In this document: in pieces, positions 4,404-51,496 of the stretch
Layout of the letters: every line of letters starts with the position of its first letter
Position numbering within the stretch: position 1 is the stretch's first letter
Sequence record: PV231354.1
Reading direction: 5' to 3' (one strand)
Length of the DNA stretch: 64,000 nt
Notes under the pieces: model-generated
What the model was told of the DNA's origin: nothing
The model's database searches: none
What the model saw: the letters and a program-made list of their open reading frames with translations, nothing else
Position numbers and translations under genes: made by a program

Positions 4404-4420
4404 GTCACCACGCACGACTG

Positions 4421-36888: not shown

Positions 36889-38589
36889 TTACAGGTGCCA
36901 GCGCGAGCCGGTGAAGGTGATCAGCGCGCGCTTGCCGTTCGGGTATTGCACGCAGTGGGTGTGCGCCCAGGACGAGGGACCCTTGTTGTAGCCCATGTCG
37001 AGCAGGGAGGTCGTCCCGGTGTTGTAGGCGCTCTCGTAGATGCCCGGCGAATGGGTATGGCCGAACGTCACCTTCGGCCCCAGTTCGGCGAACTGCTTGA
37101 TGTTGCCGCGCGAGCCGTTGGTCCCGTTGTGGCCGTGGACCGAGTGCTCGACCTTGCCCTTCATGTGGGATTGGTCCTGGAAGAGGAACTTGACCCCCTC
37201 GCAGGCCCAGGCCGTGAACTTGTTCTGCATGACCCAGGAGAAGATCGAGAACCCGCTTTCGCGCTCGCGGATCGAGCGGTATTTGCGCGCCTGACATTCC
37301 AGGAAGAACTCGGCGTTGACCGGGTCCTGGCGGTAGTCGGCCGTCTTCAGCCACTTCTCAAGCGCCAGATCGTGGTTGCTCTCGACCACCGCGATCTCGG
37401 TGTCGGGGTGGTCGGCCGCCAGGACCGACATGAACATCGCCACCTCGCGAAGCTCTTCCTCGACGCTCTCGGTCCCGTTGATGTAGAGCCAGTAGCGGTC
37501 GTGGGGGTCGGAGATGTTGTGGTGGTTGCGCGCCCGGAAGTCCGAGACGTCGTGCAGGAACACGTTCTCGGGCCGCAGGACGTCGATCATGCTGGGCGTC
37601 GCCTGCTTGACCCAGACGCGGCCGTTCGCCGTGCGCTGCTCGGTGGGGAAGAACCCGAACGTGCCGGCCGAGACCTGGGGGTCGATCTGGGCGACGTGGA
37701 TGTCGCCCGGCGTCAGGGCGGTGACCCGGTGGGCCTCGGTGACCTTGCCGTCCTGGACGAAGCGGTCCAGGTCGTAGAACGAGCCGTCCTTGTCGCCCAG
37801 CAGGTGGCGGCAGAAGAACGTGCCGTCCTCGTCGATCTCGACCAGGACAGCCCCGAGTTGGTGGTGGTGCTGGGCCTTCTGGCCCGCCAGCTTGGGAATG
37901 TAGTTCGGCTTGGTGACGGCGCCGGTCGTCATGTTCTGCTTGGACGGCTGGTCCTTCATCGTCGCGATGCTGGCCAGTTGGACCTTGGCGTGCGGGAAGA
38001 TGCCCCAGCGCTCACCCGAGTAGGTCTTCAGGCCTGAGATCGGGTTGACGTTGGTCGGCAGGGCGTTGATGTTGCCCAGGAACTCGACGCGGTCGCCCAG
38101 TTGGACGCGATCGACGATCAGGTAGTCCATGACGCGCTCGTGGTAGACCGAGGCGTGCTTGGCGTGATCTTCGAACAGGCGCTTGGAGTAGGTGAAGCCG
38201 GCGATCATGATGTCGCACGGTGCGTCCTGGCGCAGGTATTCGGCGTAGGCCTCCAGGTTGTCCACGAACTCGTCATGGACGTAGGTGGCGTCCTGGGCCG
38301 ACGACAGAATGAAGCGCCGGCGCCCGGTGTCGGGGCCGACCGGGATGACCCGCGCTTCCGGGATCGGGCGGTGCGAGAACGGGTCCTTGCGCATCGCGTA
38401 GAGGCGATTTTGCAGGGTCGTGCGCTTGACGCTGTACTTGCGGGAGAACGCCCGCTGGCCGCCGGCCTTCTTGACCATCGCCAGCAGTTCGATCGGCTCG
38501 ACCGAGTAGATGTCGAAGGGGCCGTCCTTGGGCAGGGTCACCTTCATCCGCTTGGCGGCCTTGGAGGCGTGTTCGAACTCAGCCGGCAT
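36889..38589 (-). CDS. Putative calcineurin-like metallophosphoesterase with an N-terminal HTH-like region
   Basis: GDIH, FLHD, VESNHD, VHGHNG, FGHTHSP motifs. Confidence 0.7.
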   Translation of the reverse strand: MPAEFEHASKAAKRMKVTLPKDGPFDIYSVEPIELLAMVKKAGGQRAFSRKYSVKRTTLQNRLYAMRKDPFSHRPIPEARVIPVGPDTGRRRFILSSAQDATYVHDEFVDNLEAYAEYLRQDAPCDIMIAGFTYSKRLFEDHAKHASVYHERVMDYLIVDRVQLGDRVEFLGNINALPTNVNPISGLKTYSGERWGIFPHAKVQLASIATMKDQPSKQNMTTGAVTKPNYIPKLAGQKAQHHHQLGAVLVEIDEDGTFFCRHLLGDKDGSFYDLDRFVQDGKVTEAHRVTALTPGDIHVAQIDPQVSAGTFGFFPTEQRTANGRVWVKQATPSMIDVLRPENVFLHDVSDFRARNHHNISDPHDRYWLYINGTESVEEELREVAMFMSVLAADHPDTEIAVVESNHDLALEKWLKTADYRQDPVNAEFFLECQARKYRSIRERESGFSIFSWVMQNKFTAWACEGVKFLFQDQSHMKGKVEHSVHGHNGTNGSRGNIKQFAELGPKVTFGHTHSPGIYESAYNTGTTSLLDMGYNKGPSSWAHTHCVQYPNGKRALITFTGSRWHL

Positions 38590-39280
38590 AGAGAAGCTCC
38601 GGTTTGGCGCTGACGGGCTTGGACCAGTCCCAGACGAACCACGCGTAGGCGAAGCGCGGCGCGCCCTTGGTCCCCTCGATCCAGCGGGGGCGATGGCGAA
38701 GGGTGACCTTCGCGGCGAAGGCGGGGTGATCGAAGAGGTCGGCGCGCGAGCGCGCGGCGTCCCATTCGTGGCGGCAGAGGAAGGCGACGAAGCCCTTGTC
38801 GGCTTCCATCAGCTTCAGGGCATGACGGGCGGCGCGCTCGGCGTCCTTACCGTAGGGCGGGTTGGAGATGATGGCGTCCGGGCGCGCCGGCAGCGGGGTG
38901 ACCTTGCGTTCCTTGCCCTCGTCGTCGAGGACCACCGCCGGCCGGGCCTTCAGCGCGCCCAGGCGATCCAGGTCGTCCGGCGTGAGCTTGAAGAAGTCCT
39001 CGACCGCGTCCACGTCGAAGCCCTCGTAGCGATGGATGTCCGTGGAAAGGACCTCCTGCACGTAGGGCCGCAGCGGGTTGGCGATCGCGCCGTTGCCCGC
39101 GAAGGGCTCCCAGACATAGAAGCCGGCGAACTCGTCGCCCATGGCCTCGATCAGCGCGTCGAACGCGGGACGAGGCGTCGGATAGAAATCCAAGGGGTTC
39201 CTGGCATAGCCCGAGGCGCCCAGCATGGAGGGGTCTTTGCGACCGGCATCGGAGAGAGACATGGCCAGGAGGGATGTCAT
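38579..39280 (-). CDS. Amino-type (N6-adenine/N4-cytosine) DNA methyltransferase
   Basis: DFYPTP, WEPFAGNG (SAM-binding), IISNPPY (catalytic motif IV). Confidence 0.8.
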   Translation of the reverse strand: MTSLLAMSLSDAGRKDPSMLGASGYARNPLDFYPTPRPAFDALIEAMGDEFAGFYVWEPFAGNGAIANPLRPYVQEVLSTDIHRYEGFDVDAVEDFFKLTPDDLDRLGALKARPAVVLDDEGKERKVTPLPARPDAIISNPPYGKDAERAARHALKLMEADKGFVAFLCRHEWDAARSRADLFDHPAFAAKVTLRHRPRWIEGTKGAPRFAYAWFVWDWSKPVSAKPELLYAG

Positions 39281-39339
39281 GGTTAACGAAGGGTGTCAAG
39301 ATTCACGACATTGACTGTCGTGACGCACCACGCTACACA
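39279..39339. promoter_or_regulatory. Back-to-back promoters: leftward TCGTGAATCTTGAC (39295-39308) and rightward TTGACT-17-TACACA (39311-39339)
   Basis: Motifs read directly; ATGGTTAAC at 39279-39287. Confidence 0.6.
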
Positions 39340-39972
39340 CCCTCGACGAGGCGGTCTCCTGCTCCTAGCGCGCGCTCTCCAGCCTTTCCGAGGGCGATGC
39401 GCCGGACCTGCTGAGCATGGGAATCCAGAGCGAGGCAGCGCTCTGCTCCCCAAAGAGTGGGCCAAGCGGTGCGGGCGGAAAGGCTCCGGGTCCGTGGCTC
39501 CATGCAATGCGCAGGAGAGACCGTGCTCCTTCTGACGCAGCGGGCGCCCGACGTTGCGGGTCGTGAGGCGAGGCCGGCCGAGATGATCAACGGCCTGGGG
39601 CGGGAGGGGCTTGACCTCTCCCGCATCCGCCTCTAGCGTCACCATCAATCAGGCGCAGCACTGCCTCACGATCGGACCATGTTCGGCTCCCGGTCCTGGA
39701 GCTTGGAAGCCTCACTCTGGAGCAGGACTGCCGCTGCGCCGGGGACGGTTTGGACGACGCACCCGTCCATGAGGCGAACGCCGGCCAAGACATGGCACGA
39801 GGCGTGACGGGGACCAGAGGTCCCACTCCATTCGCCGCGCCGGCGGCAGCAAAGCTCATTGAGCGGATGGTGGCACGGGTGCGAGCCCGATTTTGAGAGC
39901 CAGCGGAGAGCCACCTTCCTCCCTGGCCCGGCGACGACGAAAGCTGGGTGGCTGTAACCGCTCGTCTGAGGG
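39340..39972 (+). ncRNA. Putative large structured ncRNA (~630 nt), family unknown
   Basis: 5' CCCTCGACGAGGCGGT pairs with 3' ACCGCTCGTCTGAGGG; multiple internal helices; promoter upstream, terminator downstream; no credible ORF. Confidence 0.62.
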
Positions 39973-39998
39973 ATGCGTCCCCAAGATCATCAAGACGC

Positions 39999-40030
39999 AA
40001 AAGGCCCCGATCTCGCGATCGGGGCCTTTC
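39999..40030. terminator. Bidirectional intrinsic terminator
   Basis: AAAAGGCCCCGATC-TCGC-GATCGGGGCCTTTC between the convergent large RNA and tRNA-Cys. Confidence 0.8.
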
Positions 40031-40036
40031 AAATTC

Positions 40037-40125
40037 TGGAGCTACGGGAGGGACTCGAACCCTCATAGGTGTCGCCACCAGCAGAGATTTGCAATCCCGC
40101 GCCTAACCTCTCGGACCACCGTAGC
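40037..40125 (-). tRNA. tRNA-Cys(GCA) with a long variable arm
   Basis: GCTACGG/CCGTAGC acceptor stem, U73-CCA encoded, loop TTGCAAA, T arm GAGGG-TTCGAGT-CCCTC, variable hairpin GGTG-GCGA-CACC. Confidence 0.85.
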
Positions 40126-40311
40126 AAAACGGGACTGACGCCCGAAGGCCCAGCCCCGTTCCCGACGATCCAAGGGAGTGCCGTAGCTGTCCCAAGGAGC
40201 ACCGTGACGGCGTGGCAGGCGACTGAAGCCGTCAAGTCGAAGGGCTTCCGGCGCCGGTCACCCTAACCTCCGGGCTCTTGCGAGCGCGAGTGAGGTCCTC
40301 CTACGCCGATC

Positions 40312-40402
40312 CTTATAGCCGAGCCTTCACGCGTCCGCAACGAAAAATGTGTCGTGAGTGATGACTTTTTCCTTGACACCTTCGATTAGGCTCTGGTAGA
40401 GA
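40312..40402. promoter_or_regulatory. Divergent promoters: leftward TTGCGG-17-TATAAG and rightward TTGACA-18-TAGAGA
   Basis: Hexamers at 40335-40340/40312-40317 (minus) and 40373-40378/40397-40402 (plus). Confidence 0.55.
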
Positions 40403-40404
40403 AC

Positions 40405-40760
40405 AGGCATCGTTGTAATTCGGACAACGGAAACGGCGGCAAGACAGGGGTGCGATTCCCCTCGCCTCCACCATGAGCATCCGGCGCTGGGAGTACGCGA
40501 CTCCTGGGCAGGGAGTGTTACCCTGGCGGGCTGCGGCCCGAGCCAAAGGTAGCCGGGTGCTCATGACGGGGGCGATCAGCTTCGATTGGCGCATGTGACT
40601 GGAAGACGCAACGGTGGGTGACCTCCAGGCCAGCTTGCTGGTGATCGGGTCGAAGCAACAGAAATGTCGCTGCAAATGACAACGCTCCGTTCGCGGTGCG
40701 TGAAGCCATCGCCGCCTAATAAGCGGTAGAGGCGTGTCCCGGCGGACGCGCGTGTCACAA
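40405..40760 (+). ncRNA. ssrA: Circularly permuted (two-piece) tmRNA; tag ANDNAPFAVREAIAA
   Basis: Acceptor piece ends AGGGG-TGCGATT-CCCCT-CGCCTCC-A-CCA (40473); coding piece starts GGGGGCG (40568), giving G3.U70; tag ORF 40672-40719 followed by a second TAA; outer ends approximate. Confidence 0.9.
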
Positions 40761-40901: not shown

Positions 40902-40980
40902 CGCGGGGTAGAGGAGTCCGGTTGTCCTCGTCTGGCTCATAACCAGAAGATCAGGGGTTCAAATCCCCTTCCCGCTCCCA
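40902..40980 (+). tRNA. tRNA-Met(CAT), initiator-like
   Basis: CGCGGGG 5' end with C1:U72 mismatch, TCTGG-CTCATAA-CCAGA, AGGGG-TTCAAAT-CCCCT, CCA encoded. Confidence 0.85.
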
Positions 40981-41230
40981 GGACCTGAACGCCGAGGGAC
41001 TCCTAAAGAACGACGGCGTGACACGCTCGGAGAGAACGAGCACTGCAATCCGGGCTATGAGACCGTGATGTAGCGGACGCCGAAGCGAGAGCAGGCGTGA
41101 CACCTGGAGAGACGGGACCAGTTTTCCAGGCCGCATGCTCTCCCGCTCCGGCGAAGGGCGCCGGCGTCAGGGGATGAGGCTAGTTCCCGGCGAAGTGAAA
41201 GCCAGGGCATGCGGCTTGGAAAACTGGTTT

Positions 41231-41317
41231 GGTACGGTGGCTCGACAGGTAAGGCATCGGCCTCATAAGCCGAGGGACTAGCTCCCGATCCTGGTTCAAA
41301 TCCAGGTCGTACCTCCA
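41231..41317 (+). tRNA. tRNA with CAT anticodon, long variable arm and U73 (Met or Ile2; identity uncertain)
   Basis: GGTACGG/TCGTACC, TCGGC-CTCATAA-GCCGA, variable hairpin GGGA-CTAGC-TCCC, CCTGG-TTCAAAT-CCAGG, T-CCA. Confidence 0.82.
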
Positions 41318-49873: not shown

Positions 49874-51496
49874 TTACTTGTTGGCGAACGCCGCGACGTA
49901 GGCCTTGGCGTAGGCTTCCTTGTAGAGCGGGCCGACGTCGTCGTTGTTCTCGTCTTCGAGGTCGGTGAAGTTCGAGTAGTGCTCGCCCTTCTCGGCGTCG
50001 AGGTCGAACGTCTCGGCGTACTCGCCCTCCAGGCGCCCGTCGCGGTCGCCCGCCAGCTTGGCCCAGGCCGCGTAGTGGTGGACGAGGACCTCCTCGAACG
50101 CTTCCTCATAGAGGTACGAGTAGGTGCCCACGCCCTTGTCGGCGCTGGCGCTGTTGTCGAGCGCCGATTCAGCCACCACGTCCAGGCGCTCGCCTTCGGG
50201 GCCTTCGCCCTCGACGAGGTCGACCAGGGCCTGGAGGCGCACGCCTTCGTCGGTCTGGCTCATCGCCTGGGCGATCAGCTTCTCGGCGTCCTCGCGGCCC
50301 CAGGACTTGGCCATGGTCGTGGCCAGATCGTGGTCGACGGCGGCAAAGCCGTTGGCGTCGTAGGCGGGGGTCTCGTCGGTCGAGGCGGTCTCTTCGACCT
50401 TCTCGTCCGAGGCGTCGTCAGTGGCGGCGGCCGAGAAGCCGACGCCATAGCCCTTGACATAGCCCTCCGAGTACGCCTGCCGGGCCGAGTCGGGGCCGTC
50501 GGTGAGTTCGCCCGGCAGATCGAAAGACGCGTCGTACTCGTAGCCGTTGTCCTGGTCGGCCGCACCCGCCTTCAGGCCAGCGTCGTGGCCGATCTTGGCC
50601 CAGTCGGTCGCCTCGGCTTCGACCACCGCTTCGGGGGCCTCGGTGGTGATCACGCCGTCGGCGGCCGTGGCGTCGGTCTCGATCTCGGGATCGACCTGGG
50701 CCTGGGCGTCAGCCTGGGCGGCCTTCTCCTCGGCGTAGCGGCGCTCGACGGCGGCGGTGAAGTAGTTGACCGCGTCGGCCTCGGGGATTTCGCCCAGGAC
50801 CTTCATCTCGCAGCAGCGCAGCTTGGTGAGGTTGTAGTCGGTCGGGATCGCCGTGACGTCCTTGGGGTTGATCTCGACGATGATGATCTTGCCCCGGCCG
50901 CCGTGGAACGAGCGCAGGTAGTCGAACGAGCAGGCGTGCAGGCCGCGCGAACAGGTCTGGTTGCGGTTCGGGTCACAGAGGTCGCGATCCATCGAGACCG
51001 TGCTGCCGATCTTGTACTCGACGGTGTGTGAGTGCAGGTCGAAGTAGTCCTCGCCCACGCGCTTGAAGGCATGGAACATGCCGTCCGGCGTCAGCGGGTT
51101 GCGACCCTTCTCCAGGAAGGCGTAGAGATCGGCGGCGATCGACTTGTCGGGGTTCTGGTCGACATTGGCGATGAAGTTGGTCAGCGGCTCCATGTCGAAG
51201 CCTTCCGCCAGCACGCGCTTGAAGGTGCCGGCCGCCACGTAGTCGACGACCTTGCCGTCCAGGCGCAGGCGGTCGCGATCGTCCAGGATGACGCGGCCGA
51301 ACGAGTGGGCCGCCACATAGGCCGCCACGTCGGCGATCAGCCGGATTTCGTCGATGTCCTGCGGGACCTTCTTGACGGCCTCTTCCAGCTTCTTGCCCTG
51401 CGACGAGCCGCGAGGGAAGGAGCGGTAGCGCCCGTCCAGGGTGATCGAGATCGCGTCGACGGTGATCGTCACGGCGACCTTCGCTTGGGTAGTCAT
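49874..51496 (-). CDS. rIIB: rIIB-like protein with an acidic C-terminal extension
   Basis: FHAFKRV..DY.D.HS, MDR..CDPNRNQTCSRGLH, INPKDVTAIP.DYN..KLRCC; follows rIIA. Confidence 0.88.
   Translation of the reverse strand: MTTQAKVAVTITVDAISITLDGRYRSFPRGSSQGKKLEEAVKKVPQDIDEIRLIADVAAYVAAHSFGRVILDDRDRLRLDGKVVDYVAAGTFKRVLAEGFDMEPLTNFIANVDQNPDKSIAADLYAFLEKGRNPLTPDGMFHAFKRVGEDYFDLHSHTVEYKIGSTVSMDRDLCDPNRNQTCSRGLHACSFDYLRSFHGGRGKIIIVEINPKDVTAIPTDYNLTKLRCCEMKVLGEIPEADAVNYFTAAVERRYAEEKAAQADAQAQVDPEIETDATAADGVITTEAPEAVVEAEATDWAKIGHDAGLKAGAADQDNGYEYDASFDLPGELTDGPDSARQAYSEGYVKGYGVGFSAAATDDASDEKVEETASTDETPAYDANGFAAVDHDLATTMAKSWGREDAEKLIAQAMSQTDEGVRLQALVDLVEGEGPEGERLDVVAESALDNSASADKGVGTYSYLYEEAFEEVLVHHYAAWAKLAGDRDGRLEGEYAETFDLDAEKGEHYSNFTDLEDENNDDVGPLYKEAYAKAYVAAFANK

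Follow-up and report, generated by a model that had tools for sequence, protein, structure and literature searches.

A conserved structured RNA locus with a repeated pseudoknot-hairpin motif in the tRNA/tmRNA island of phiCbK-like phages

Structured RNAs beside phage tRNA genes

GOLLD is a large, structured phage non-coding RNA (ncRNA) of unknown function that lies by transfer RNA (tRNA) genes, and ROOL, an ornate RNA of ~600 nucleotides (nt), is found near the tRNAs of phages and prophages. Smaller RNAs also accompany such genes, including species 1 and 2 (rnaC and rnaD) of the phage T4 tRNA cluster, which are small stable RNAs of unknown function that are co-transcribed and co-processed with the phage tRNAs. 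Here, an RNA locus is described from Caulobacter phage RBC8, a CcrRogue-like member of the Dolichocephalovirinae, using a window of 64,000 nt from sequence record PV231354.1 (the window is the whole stretch that was analysed, and positions without a locus name refer to it). The region of interest is 100% identical to RBC8 (PV231354.1), and the coordinates and annotated genes of the window match RBC8 from 62001 on. Positions 39346–40030 (+ strand), next to tRNA and transfer-messenger RNA (tmRNA) genes, form a conserved, untranslated, structured transcription unit of the phiCbK-like phages, and the locus is built from modules in which a variable structured body is combined with one conserved element of ~60 nt, an H-type pseudoknot followed by a hairpin.

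Like GOLLD, the RBC8 locus is adjacent to tRNA genes; it differs in being modular, in having no supported global fold, and in lacking a match to the GOLLD model (at 150 bits). It likewise has no match to the ROOL model at the thresholds used, and no motifs common to the two were seen. The likeness of the RBC8 motif RNAs to the T4 stable RNAs is one of description, not of sequence or structure, and species 1 and 2 are not known to have a repeated pseudoknot handle in common. Repeated structured elements are also found in phage T7, in which irregular long hairpins act as RNase III sites over the early and late regions, between polycistronic units, and leave protective 3′ hairpins; the RBC8-type motif, by comparison, is a pseudoknot and occurs in one RNA island only. 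In type III toxin-antitoxin systems, ToxI is composed of pseudoknot-forming 36-nt tandem repeats located by toxN with their own promoter and terminator, and phages can carry mimics, whereas the motif units of RBC8 are ~60 nt in length, ~200 nt apart, and without an adjacent toxin gene. The theta ribozymes, minimal ribozymes like that of hepatitis delta virus (HDV) that occur next to gut-phage tRNAs and have a proposed role in tRNA maturation (PMC10879173), resemble the motif in being small pseudoknotted elements that abut phage tRNA genes. Theta, however, follows tRNAs on their 3′ side and folds as the nested double pseudoknot of HDV, with a catalytic C, whereas the RBC8-type motif, a simple H-type knot with a hairpin, is for the most part on the 5′ side of tRNAs.

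Scans with Rfam returned no family match at 39200–40450 (E ≤ 10), nor at the locus in a scan of the whole window (E ≤ 1), and a further 11 related loci were without a match at the RNA locus. An earlier, sequence-only reading of this DNA had failed to match RNase P or group I/II intron cores, and this was upheld by the Rfam models at both thresholds; the models of GOLLD, ROOL, and OLE gave no match either. It had also suggested a large RNA of the GOLLD-like kind or a new class and asked for an Rfam scan; that scan was run and gave no match, and true GOLLD is located elsewhere in the island of sister phages. GOLLD (RF02032) was found above the gathering threshold in phiCbK (L003:3548–4034, − strand, 165 bits) and BL57 (L009:2753–3239, − strand, 170 bits), and below it in Bajun (L267:3712–4130, − strand, 104 bits, E = 1e-26). 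In these three phages GOLLD sits on the − strand between tRNA-Cys and tmRNA, enclosing annotated tRNA-Gly/Lys, which is on the other side of tRNA-Cys and on the opposite strand relative to the motif RNA. As GOLLD was found in sister phages by the same scans, a GOLLD at the RNA locus would have been detected. RBC8 and BL10 are without GOLLD, and their corresponding gap (40126–40410 in RBC8) is just 285 nt. The literature searched made no mention of GOLLD in Caulobacter phages and no description of such a motif RNA, and in the phiCbK genome paper Rfam gave no RNA besides tRNAs (PMC3556154). A public RNA-seq series (GSE241057) covers a time course of phiCbK infection (PMC10688885).

A non-coding transcription unit

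The interval 39281–40036 is non-coding. The GC content at third codon positions (GC3) is 0.90 ± 0.03 (minimum, 0.80) in 36 annotated genes of the window, compared to 0.58–0.76 in every open reading frame (ORF) overlapping 39283–40138. Between close relatives, substitutions are spread evenly over codon positions (14/12/13 and 14/16/13) and indels in the locus are almost never multiples of three. Further, RBC8 and phiCbK have ORF annotations that differ in phase at 263 of 329 aligned columns, and several related genomes have no ORF annotated at the locus. On all of these measures, the sequence-only reading was correct in seeing no credible ORF in the segment.

The − strand ORF that is annotated in RBC8 (RBC8_126c, 39587–40000, ‘DNA transfer protein’; CcrRogue gp125) has a GC3 of 0.62, lacks a PHROG match, and takes its start codon from the foot of a terminator stem; it is a spurious ORF. 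A protein-coding gene on this strand (CcrRogue gp125, RBC8_126c, or phiCbK gp128) would agree with the annotation in several GenBank records and with the match of phiCbK gp128 to phrog_13461, a family of unknown function that was presumably built from these same ORF calls, but set against the low GC3, the absence of codon periodicity, frames that disagree between genomes, indels that are not in threes, genomes devoid of the ORF, the missing PHROG match, and the position of the start codon, such a gene can be given practically no credence. A family of phage annotations is thereby cleared of a spurious gene, labelled ‘DNA transfer protein’ or hypothetical. The real A1-like ‘DNA transfer protein’ is RBC8_124c (phrog_1745, E = 6e-192), which is labelled hypothetical in the RBC8 record.

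The RNA is predicted to be driven by a promoter, P1 (39311–39339, + strand), with TTGACTG (39311–39317), a spacer of 14 nt, and GCTACACA (39332–39339), from which transcription would be expected to start at ~39346. The Caulobacter sigma73 consensus is TTGACGS, 10–14 nt, GCTANAWC, which we take P1 to fit. In an alignment of eight phages, the −35 element of P1 is invariant and GCTA/GTTA of the −10 element is kept; the left end of this alignment is an invariant block, part of which belongs to the neighbouring − strand operon. A predicted intrinsic terminator (40003–40030, + strand) has a GC-rich stem of 10 bp (40003–40012/40017–40026) followed by UUUC, and the hairpin and U-run are kept in all eight aligned phages, with UUUU in relatives. 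Both boundaries had been proposed from the sequence alone and both are kept among relatives, the promoter-like site at 39311–39339 lying in a (nearly) invariant block of the eight phages and the terminator hairpin (40003–40026) and U-run being conserved. A simple scanner for E. coli-type promoters and terminators listed neither P1 nor the terminator (for terminators, it demands five T in eight).

A candidate internal promoter, P2 (39611–39639, + strand; TTGACCT, 14 nt, TCTAGCGT), was identified as a consensus match and probably splits the RNA locus internally. The −35 element of P2 is inside the loop of a hairpin in the first motif copy (copy A, below), and its CTTGA and CTA are invariant in the eight-phage alignment. 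The spacing of P2 is the same as that of P1 and of the promoter-like sites 3′ of motif copies in CcrPW, Gurke, Marchewka, L019, and L115.

A repeated pseudoknot-hairpin motif

The motif was recognised from CcrPW, in which a conserved 60-nt core is present four times, the last of them directly against the tRNA-Cys 5′ end. Based on copies at 14 loci, the motif of ~60 nt consists of an H-type pseudoknot (stem S1, 3–4 bp; stem S2, 4–6 bp) and then a GC-rich hairpin, P3. The 5′ part of the consensus runs (Y)UGA-S-G-C-G-A, the 5′ strand of S2 (ACGCC), GGCC-RAGA, and 6–9 variable nt; the 3′ part runs AC-N-A, the 3′ strand of S2 (GGCGU), GACG, and P3, topped by CC-AGA-GG. About 30 bases are invariant or near-invariant, many of them unpaired. 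The order of the strands (S1-5′, S2-5′, S1-3′, S2-3′, then the hairpin), with stems that covary, is that of an H-type pseudoknot.

Covariation was tested on 24 motif copies with 500 shuffles. Motif cells were paired in 82% of cases (shuffles, 72%), nine pairs had double changes, and the covariation score (0.272; shuffled, 0.103) was above every slid control and was reached by none of the 500 shuffles. S2 is 99% paired with double changes at three of five pairs, and P3 covaries at four of six. S1 links the G-C of the 5′ block to the G-C of GGCC; its central pair is C-G (n = 18), G-C (n = 4), A-U (n = 1), or U-G (n = 1) and never unpaired, and the pair beside it is an invariant G-C. Additional variants of S2 occur in copies A and C (GGCC/GGCC, GGACU/GGUCC, CGUC/GACG, and UGCGUC/GACGCA). 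The motif helices hold 13 G.U compared to five A.C, an excess that favours the + strand. A DNA-level element of the replication module, such as an origin or a regulatory repeat, would suit a non-coding region of ~750 bp with repeated units and promoters inside a replication gene block, but it is made highly improbable by helices that are kept through compensatory changes with strand-specific G.U pairs, by copies that abut same-strand tRNA genes, and by the terminator being part of the last copies.

Several alternative folds were tried and rejected. An HDV-like/theta fold, defined by a nested double pseudoknot (P1-P2-P3-P1.1-P4) and a catalytic C in J4/2 ahead of the P2 3′ strand, was set aside on the strand order (a-b-a′-b′ and then a hairpin), the unconserved bases 3′ of P3, and the lack of an Rfam match. 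A hammerhead, which has a CUGANGA and GAAA core, an A-U pair closing helix III, and a cleavable NUH, was set aside on the presence of CUGA-S-G-Y-GA and GACG, the closing of P3 by G-C, and again the lack of an Rfam match. Nor did the copies agree on a second pseudoknot in which the variable loop would pair upstream of UGA.

In RBC8, three copies of the motif are embedded in the + strand locus. The body of module 1 (39346–39561) has a domain closed by 39353–39362/39512–39523 in the RNAalifold consensus, with compensatory pairs, and includes a hairpin with an invariant loop, CGAGGCAGCG (39426–39446). Motif copy A (39564–39624) follows, comprising UGAGGCGA, S2 as GGCC/GGCC (39572–39575/39592–39595; GGACU/GGUCC in BL10), GGCCGAGA, and a long hairpin (39600–39624); R1, a covariance model built from the motif, recovers it at 39562–39628 (18.5 bits, E = 4e-5). 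The body of module 2 (39646–39767) carries the conserved GCGCAGCAC (39653–39661) and GGACUGCC (39725–39732) and leads into the canonical copy B (39770–39824), which has UGAGGCGA at 39770–39777, S1 as GGC/GCC (39773–39775/39784–39786), S2 as ACGCC/GGCGU (39778–39782/39801–39805), a GACG linker, and P3 (39810–39815/39819–39824) with an AGA loop. Copy B scores 73.5 bits with R1 (39768–39829) and is ~90% identical in Brevundimonas jumbo phages. A structured spacer with compensatory changes (39830–39965) contains a GNRA hairpin (39876–39889; loop GCGA in RBC8 and GAAA in some relatives), a conserved UUYGAGAGCC (39893–39902), and further hairpins. Copy C (39966–40030) is fused to the terminator and consists of CUGAGGGA, S2 as UGCGUC/GACGCA (39974–39979/39994–39999), CCCAAGA, AAA, and the terminator stem with its UUUC. 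As P3 is replaced by the terminator, copy C scores merely 0.6 bits with R1; it was recognised by eye, and the consensus fold includes its S2 helix. The idea that copy C pairs with the terminator as an antiterminator was rejected, as RBC8 has this pairing and the Shapiroviruses do not. Two degenerate + strand copies (40979–41043 and 41067–41121; R1, 9.7 and 16.6 bits) are located in the spacer that separates the tRNA-Met genes from each other.

Overall, the + strand is more stable than its shuffles (z = −4.0, 20 shuffles), and the − strand is so to a lesser degree (z = −2.3). In the RNAalifold consensus fold of seven sequences, compensatory changes are seen at 44 of 172 pairs. The alifold energy is −184.8 on the + strand compared to −164.7 on the − strand. 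The architecture that had been proposed from sequence alone, a single end-paired fold of ~630 nt, was retained in its local parts and is unsupported in its global ones. Its hairpins at 39426–39445, 39600–39624, 39810–39824, and 39876–39889 are all kept with compensatory changes. The terminal helix of ~15 bp (39340–39355/39957–39972) is paired in 54% of alignment cells, essentially in RBC8 and BL10 only, and has its 5′ arm at or before the likely start site and its 3′ arm within motif copy C; a long-range helix (39357–39365/39719–39727) has no compensatory changes and no 5′ partner in Bajun, and another (39561–39569/39663–39671) clashes with the covarying pseudoknot of copy A. A further pairing (39352–39362/39511–39523) is kept by the consensus fold, in which it closes the 5′ domain, but its supposed role as a competing switch is not. 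Of the proposed large ncRNA, a genuine structured + strand locus next to the tRNA/tmRNA genes is upheld, non-coding and bounded by a predicted promoter and terminator of its own, and the single fold is not; comparison among relatives favours a modular chain, in which two or three units would each end in one and the same pseudoknot-hairpin motif.

One large ornate RNA of ~685 nt of the GOLLD/ROOL kind, perhaps multimerising, with the three motifs as building blocks or contact sites, would draw on the one clear promoter/terminator pair, the stability of the whole segment, the compensatory pairs of the consensus fold, and an island in which sister phages carry GOLLD. It is nonetheless doubtful, given that the terminal and long-range helices are unconserved, that Bajun lacks module 1, that promoters, ORFs, and tRNAs separate the modules in jumbo relatives, and that GOLLD and ROOL gave no match.

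Genomic context and possible function

Homologues of the RNA locus are present in all of the Dolichocephalovirinae records searched (38/38), and conservation with promoter and terminator kept extends to 30–38 phage records. Using blastn, the whole 756-nt interval was found in 21 phiCbK-type records, with ~67% identity to the Shapiroviruses, and the 60-nt core was ~90% identical in the Brevundimonas jumbo phages and CcrPW. Records have 1–4 motif copies (blastn), all within the tRNA/tmRNA island wherever sequence was fetched. A pattern scan of IMG/VR returned the known phages and one extra contig, L019, with a looser pattern giving chance matches only, and a pattern scan of metagenomes added one more true contig, L115. 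There was no true motif copy among the screened loci from a pattern scan of 185,579 bacterial/archaeal species genomes, and relatives sought via the A1-like protein were known phages only. Across genera, the module bodies are too divergent for a MAFFT/RNAalifold consensus. Degenerate short repeats (ccggacat/ctggaca-like) occur between two motif-bearing modules of L019 (L019:2130–2400).

The sequence that follows the motif falls into a few types. In CcrPW, Colossus, and the metagenomic contig L019, the motif ends 1–6 nt 5′ of tRNA-Cys (1 nt in L019). L019 also has a strong copy (47.7 bits) 6 nt 5′ of tRNA-Met, in the same spacer as the degenerate copies of RBC8, and has the motif ~20 nt ahead of the ribosome-binding site (RBS) of small ORFs. 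In Gurke, CcrPW, Colossus, Marchewka, L019, and L115, the motif is 0–12 nt ahead of promoter-like TTGAC-N14 sites. The arrays of RBC8, the Shapiroviruses, BL57, Bajun, Gurke, and Marchewka close with a copy in which a terminator stands in place of P3 (motif and terminator fusions at L267:3175 in Bajun, L265:3515 in Marchewka, and L010:2745 in Gurke). There is approximately one motif per promoter-delimited unit.

Bajun, which infects another host genus and has the same gene order, has a promoter directly 5′ of the equivalent of module 2 and is without module 1. The GCGCAGCAC, GCUUGGAAG, and GGACUGC blocks of RBC8 module 2 also occur in the tRNA-Cys 5′ leader of CcrPW and L019, as does GGACUGCC, and both GCGCAGCAC and GGACUGCC are found in Marchewka and Bajun as well. 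Judged by these shared blocks, the jumbo relatives have the orthologue of RBC8 module 2 as their tRNA-Cys leader; in phiCbK types, tRNA-Cys is on the strand opposite to the module RNA. The absence of module 1 from Bajun, together with the module-2 blocks common to tRNA-Cys leaders, indicates that the locus is modular.

The reading that we favour, with a probability of roughly 0.4, is that the locus may be an array of small RNAs derived from leaders, in which a shared pseudoknot-hairpin would act as a 3′ handle that protects the end, serves in processing, or binds a protein. Instead of one giant RNA, two or three small RNAs of ~180–290 nt would arise from P1 and the internal P2, by processing, and by termination at 40030, and the pseudoknot-hairpin would serve as their common 3′ handle. 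P3 would mark the mature 3′ end, as the motif is followed by the start of a tRNA, by an RBS, by another promoter, or by a terminator in the place of P3. The handle could define and protect this end after a cut just downstream by RNase P or another endonuclease, the 3′ end of the last copy being formed by intrinsic termination with the terminator hairpin standing in for P3, and its invariant unpaired bases might offer a docking site for a putative protein. As module 2 is orthologous to the leader of the jumbo tRNA-Cys/tmRNA/tRNA-Met operon, the RNAs may be by-products or partners of the maturation of the tRNA operon. Several points weigh against this reading. The function would be drawn wholly from position, and P2 is put forward as a consensus match only. 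Processing is not required by the data, as a promoter or terminator that follows the motif needs no cleavage, and the motif is confined to one island, unlike general processing signals, which are spread across operons. The excess stability of the whole 633 nt over shuffles is equally explained by a single large fold, and the covariation statistics are inflated, as the copies come from just ~5–6 independent lineages.

The same placement could suit a cis-regulatory leader controlling downstream cargo, whether by put-like antitermination, attenuation, or a switch responsive to a ligand or protein: each promoter is separated from its cargo by one copy, copies are found just 5′ of an RBS or tRNA, and the terminal copies are an aptamer-like fold with an immediate terminator. 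The cargo is inconsistent, however, being a tRNA, unrelated small ORFs, or nothing, copies A and B of RBC8 are without cargo, no alternative pairing with the terminator is conserved (that of RBC8, above, included), and no riboswitch model matched, so that a leader of this type appears unlikely. A riboswitch, which would be expected beside genes of one pathway and with an expression platform that competes with the aptamer, was among the candidates rejected, on downstream elements that vary (tRNA-Cys, tRNA-Met, unrelated small ORFs, promoters, or nothing) and on the lack of a conserved alternative pairing. It is quite unlikely, too, that the motif represents a small self-cleaving ribozyme of a new class, cutting the polycistronic transcripts of the tRNA island where modules meet. 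Though a compact pseudoknotted fold with ~30 (near-)invariant bases, many unpaired, several copies per phage, direct adjacency to tRNA ends, and the precedent of theta ribozymes in gut phages (PMC10879173) would fit such a ribozyme, the strand order is unlike that of HDV-like or hammerhead ribozymes, the motif of L019 leaves just 1 nt before tRNA-Cys, no Rfam ribozyme matched, and tRNA 5′ ends are already made by RNase P.

To the left of the RNA locus, a DNA methylase gene (38579–39280, − strand) is at the start of a − strand operon that includes the gene of the T5 A1-like protein, RBC8_124c (36889–38589, − strand). A copy of a phage promoter motif, GTCGTGAATCTTGACACC (39292–39309, − strand), drives this divergent methylase/A1-like operon and not the RNA. 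The underlying motif, GTCGTGAATCTTGACAYC, has 11 copies in the window compared to 0.04 expected (at 4420, 10572, 16402, 24894, 25849, 32071, 39292, 41462, 47707, 53734, and 56516), and as all nine of the copies checked against annotated genes aim at those genes, it represents a phage promoter class. A GANTC (CcrM methylation) site is present just upstream of its −35 element, and GTTAAC-like elements are often nearby. The methylase start is recorded at 39280 in RBC8 and at 39193 in Rogue and BL10; the downstream start (39193) is favoured by a dip in GC3 to ~0.66 over 39200–39300 and by a distance of just 12 nt between the − strand promoter (39292–39309) and the upstream ATG.

To the right, tRNA-Cys (40037–40125, − strand) lies 6 nt past the terminator, and the tmRNA and two tRNA-Met genes are within 1.3 kb of the RNA locus. 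The tmRNA is of the permuted, two-piece type (40411–40719; Rfam, 89.8 bits); ARAGORN, which found its homologues in L014 and L019, missed it in the window. At 89 nt and 87 nt, tRNA-Cys and the second tRNA-Met (41231–41317) are of unusual length for their isotypes, and the former scores merely 35 bits with the Rfam tRNA model. Elsewhere in the window, a weak match to a retroviral-type frameshift-site model (50192–50238, − strand, 31.5 bits, E = 0.036, below gathering) is probably due to chance. In the Brevundimonas jumbo phages, CcrPW, and Colossus, a Ro60/TROVE-vWA protein is encoded (L010:630–2000, L011:631–2001, and L265:1083–2468), with weak YrlA-like (Y RNA) matches just upstream that overlap an annotated ‘tRNA-Ser’ (L010:465–563). 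The Ro60/TROVE gene beside the motif region in Gurke and Kikimora prompted the idea that the motif RNA is a Y RNA/YrlA, a kind of RNA that goes with a Ro60 gene of the same genome, usually an adjacent one. This idea was rejected: RBC8 and phiCbK types are without Ro60, Ro60 is 25 kb from the motif region in CcrPW, and the YrlA-like matches are on the other side of Ro60.

The locus adds a new RNA family, of narrow phylogenetic range, to a known kind, the as yet unexplained structured RNAs found with phage tRNA clusters. It is a doubtful prospect that the element is instead a new catalytic RNA or one that directs a polymerase or nuclease, either a self-cleaving ribozyme or a put-like RNA reprogramming the host RNA polymerase or RNase; were this so, the Dolichocephalovirinae would have a means, independent of host signals, of maturing or insulating their tRNA/tmRNA operon. 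As the motif is small and well defined and the host-phage pair is tractable and non-pathogenic, it offers a good entry point to the function of structured RNAs that travel with phage tRNA clusters. The tRNA/tmRNA island of phiCbK, a classic model phage, emerges as a dense island of RNA genes, with a lineage-wide family of structured RNAs and, in some genera, GOLLD alongside.

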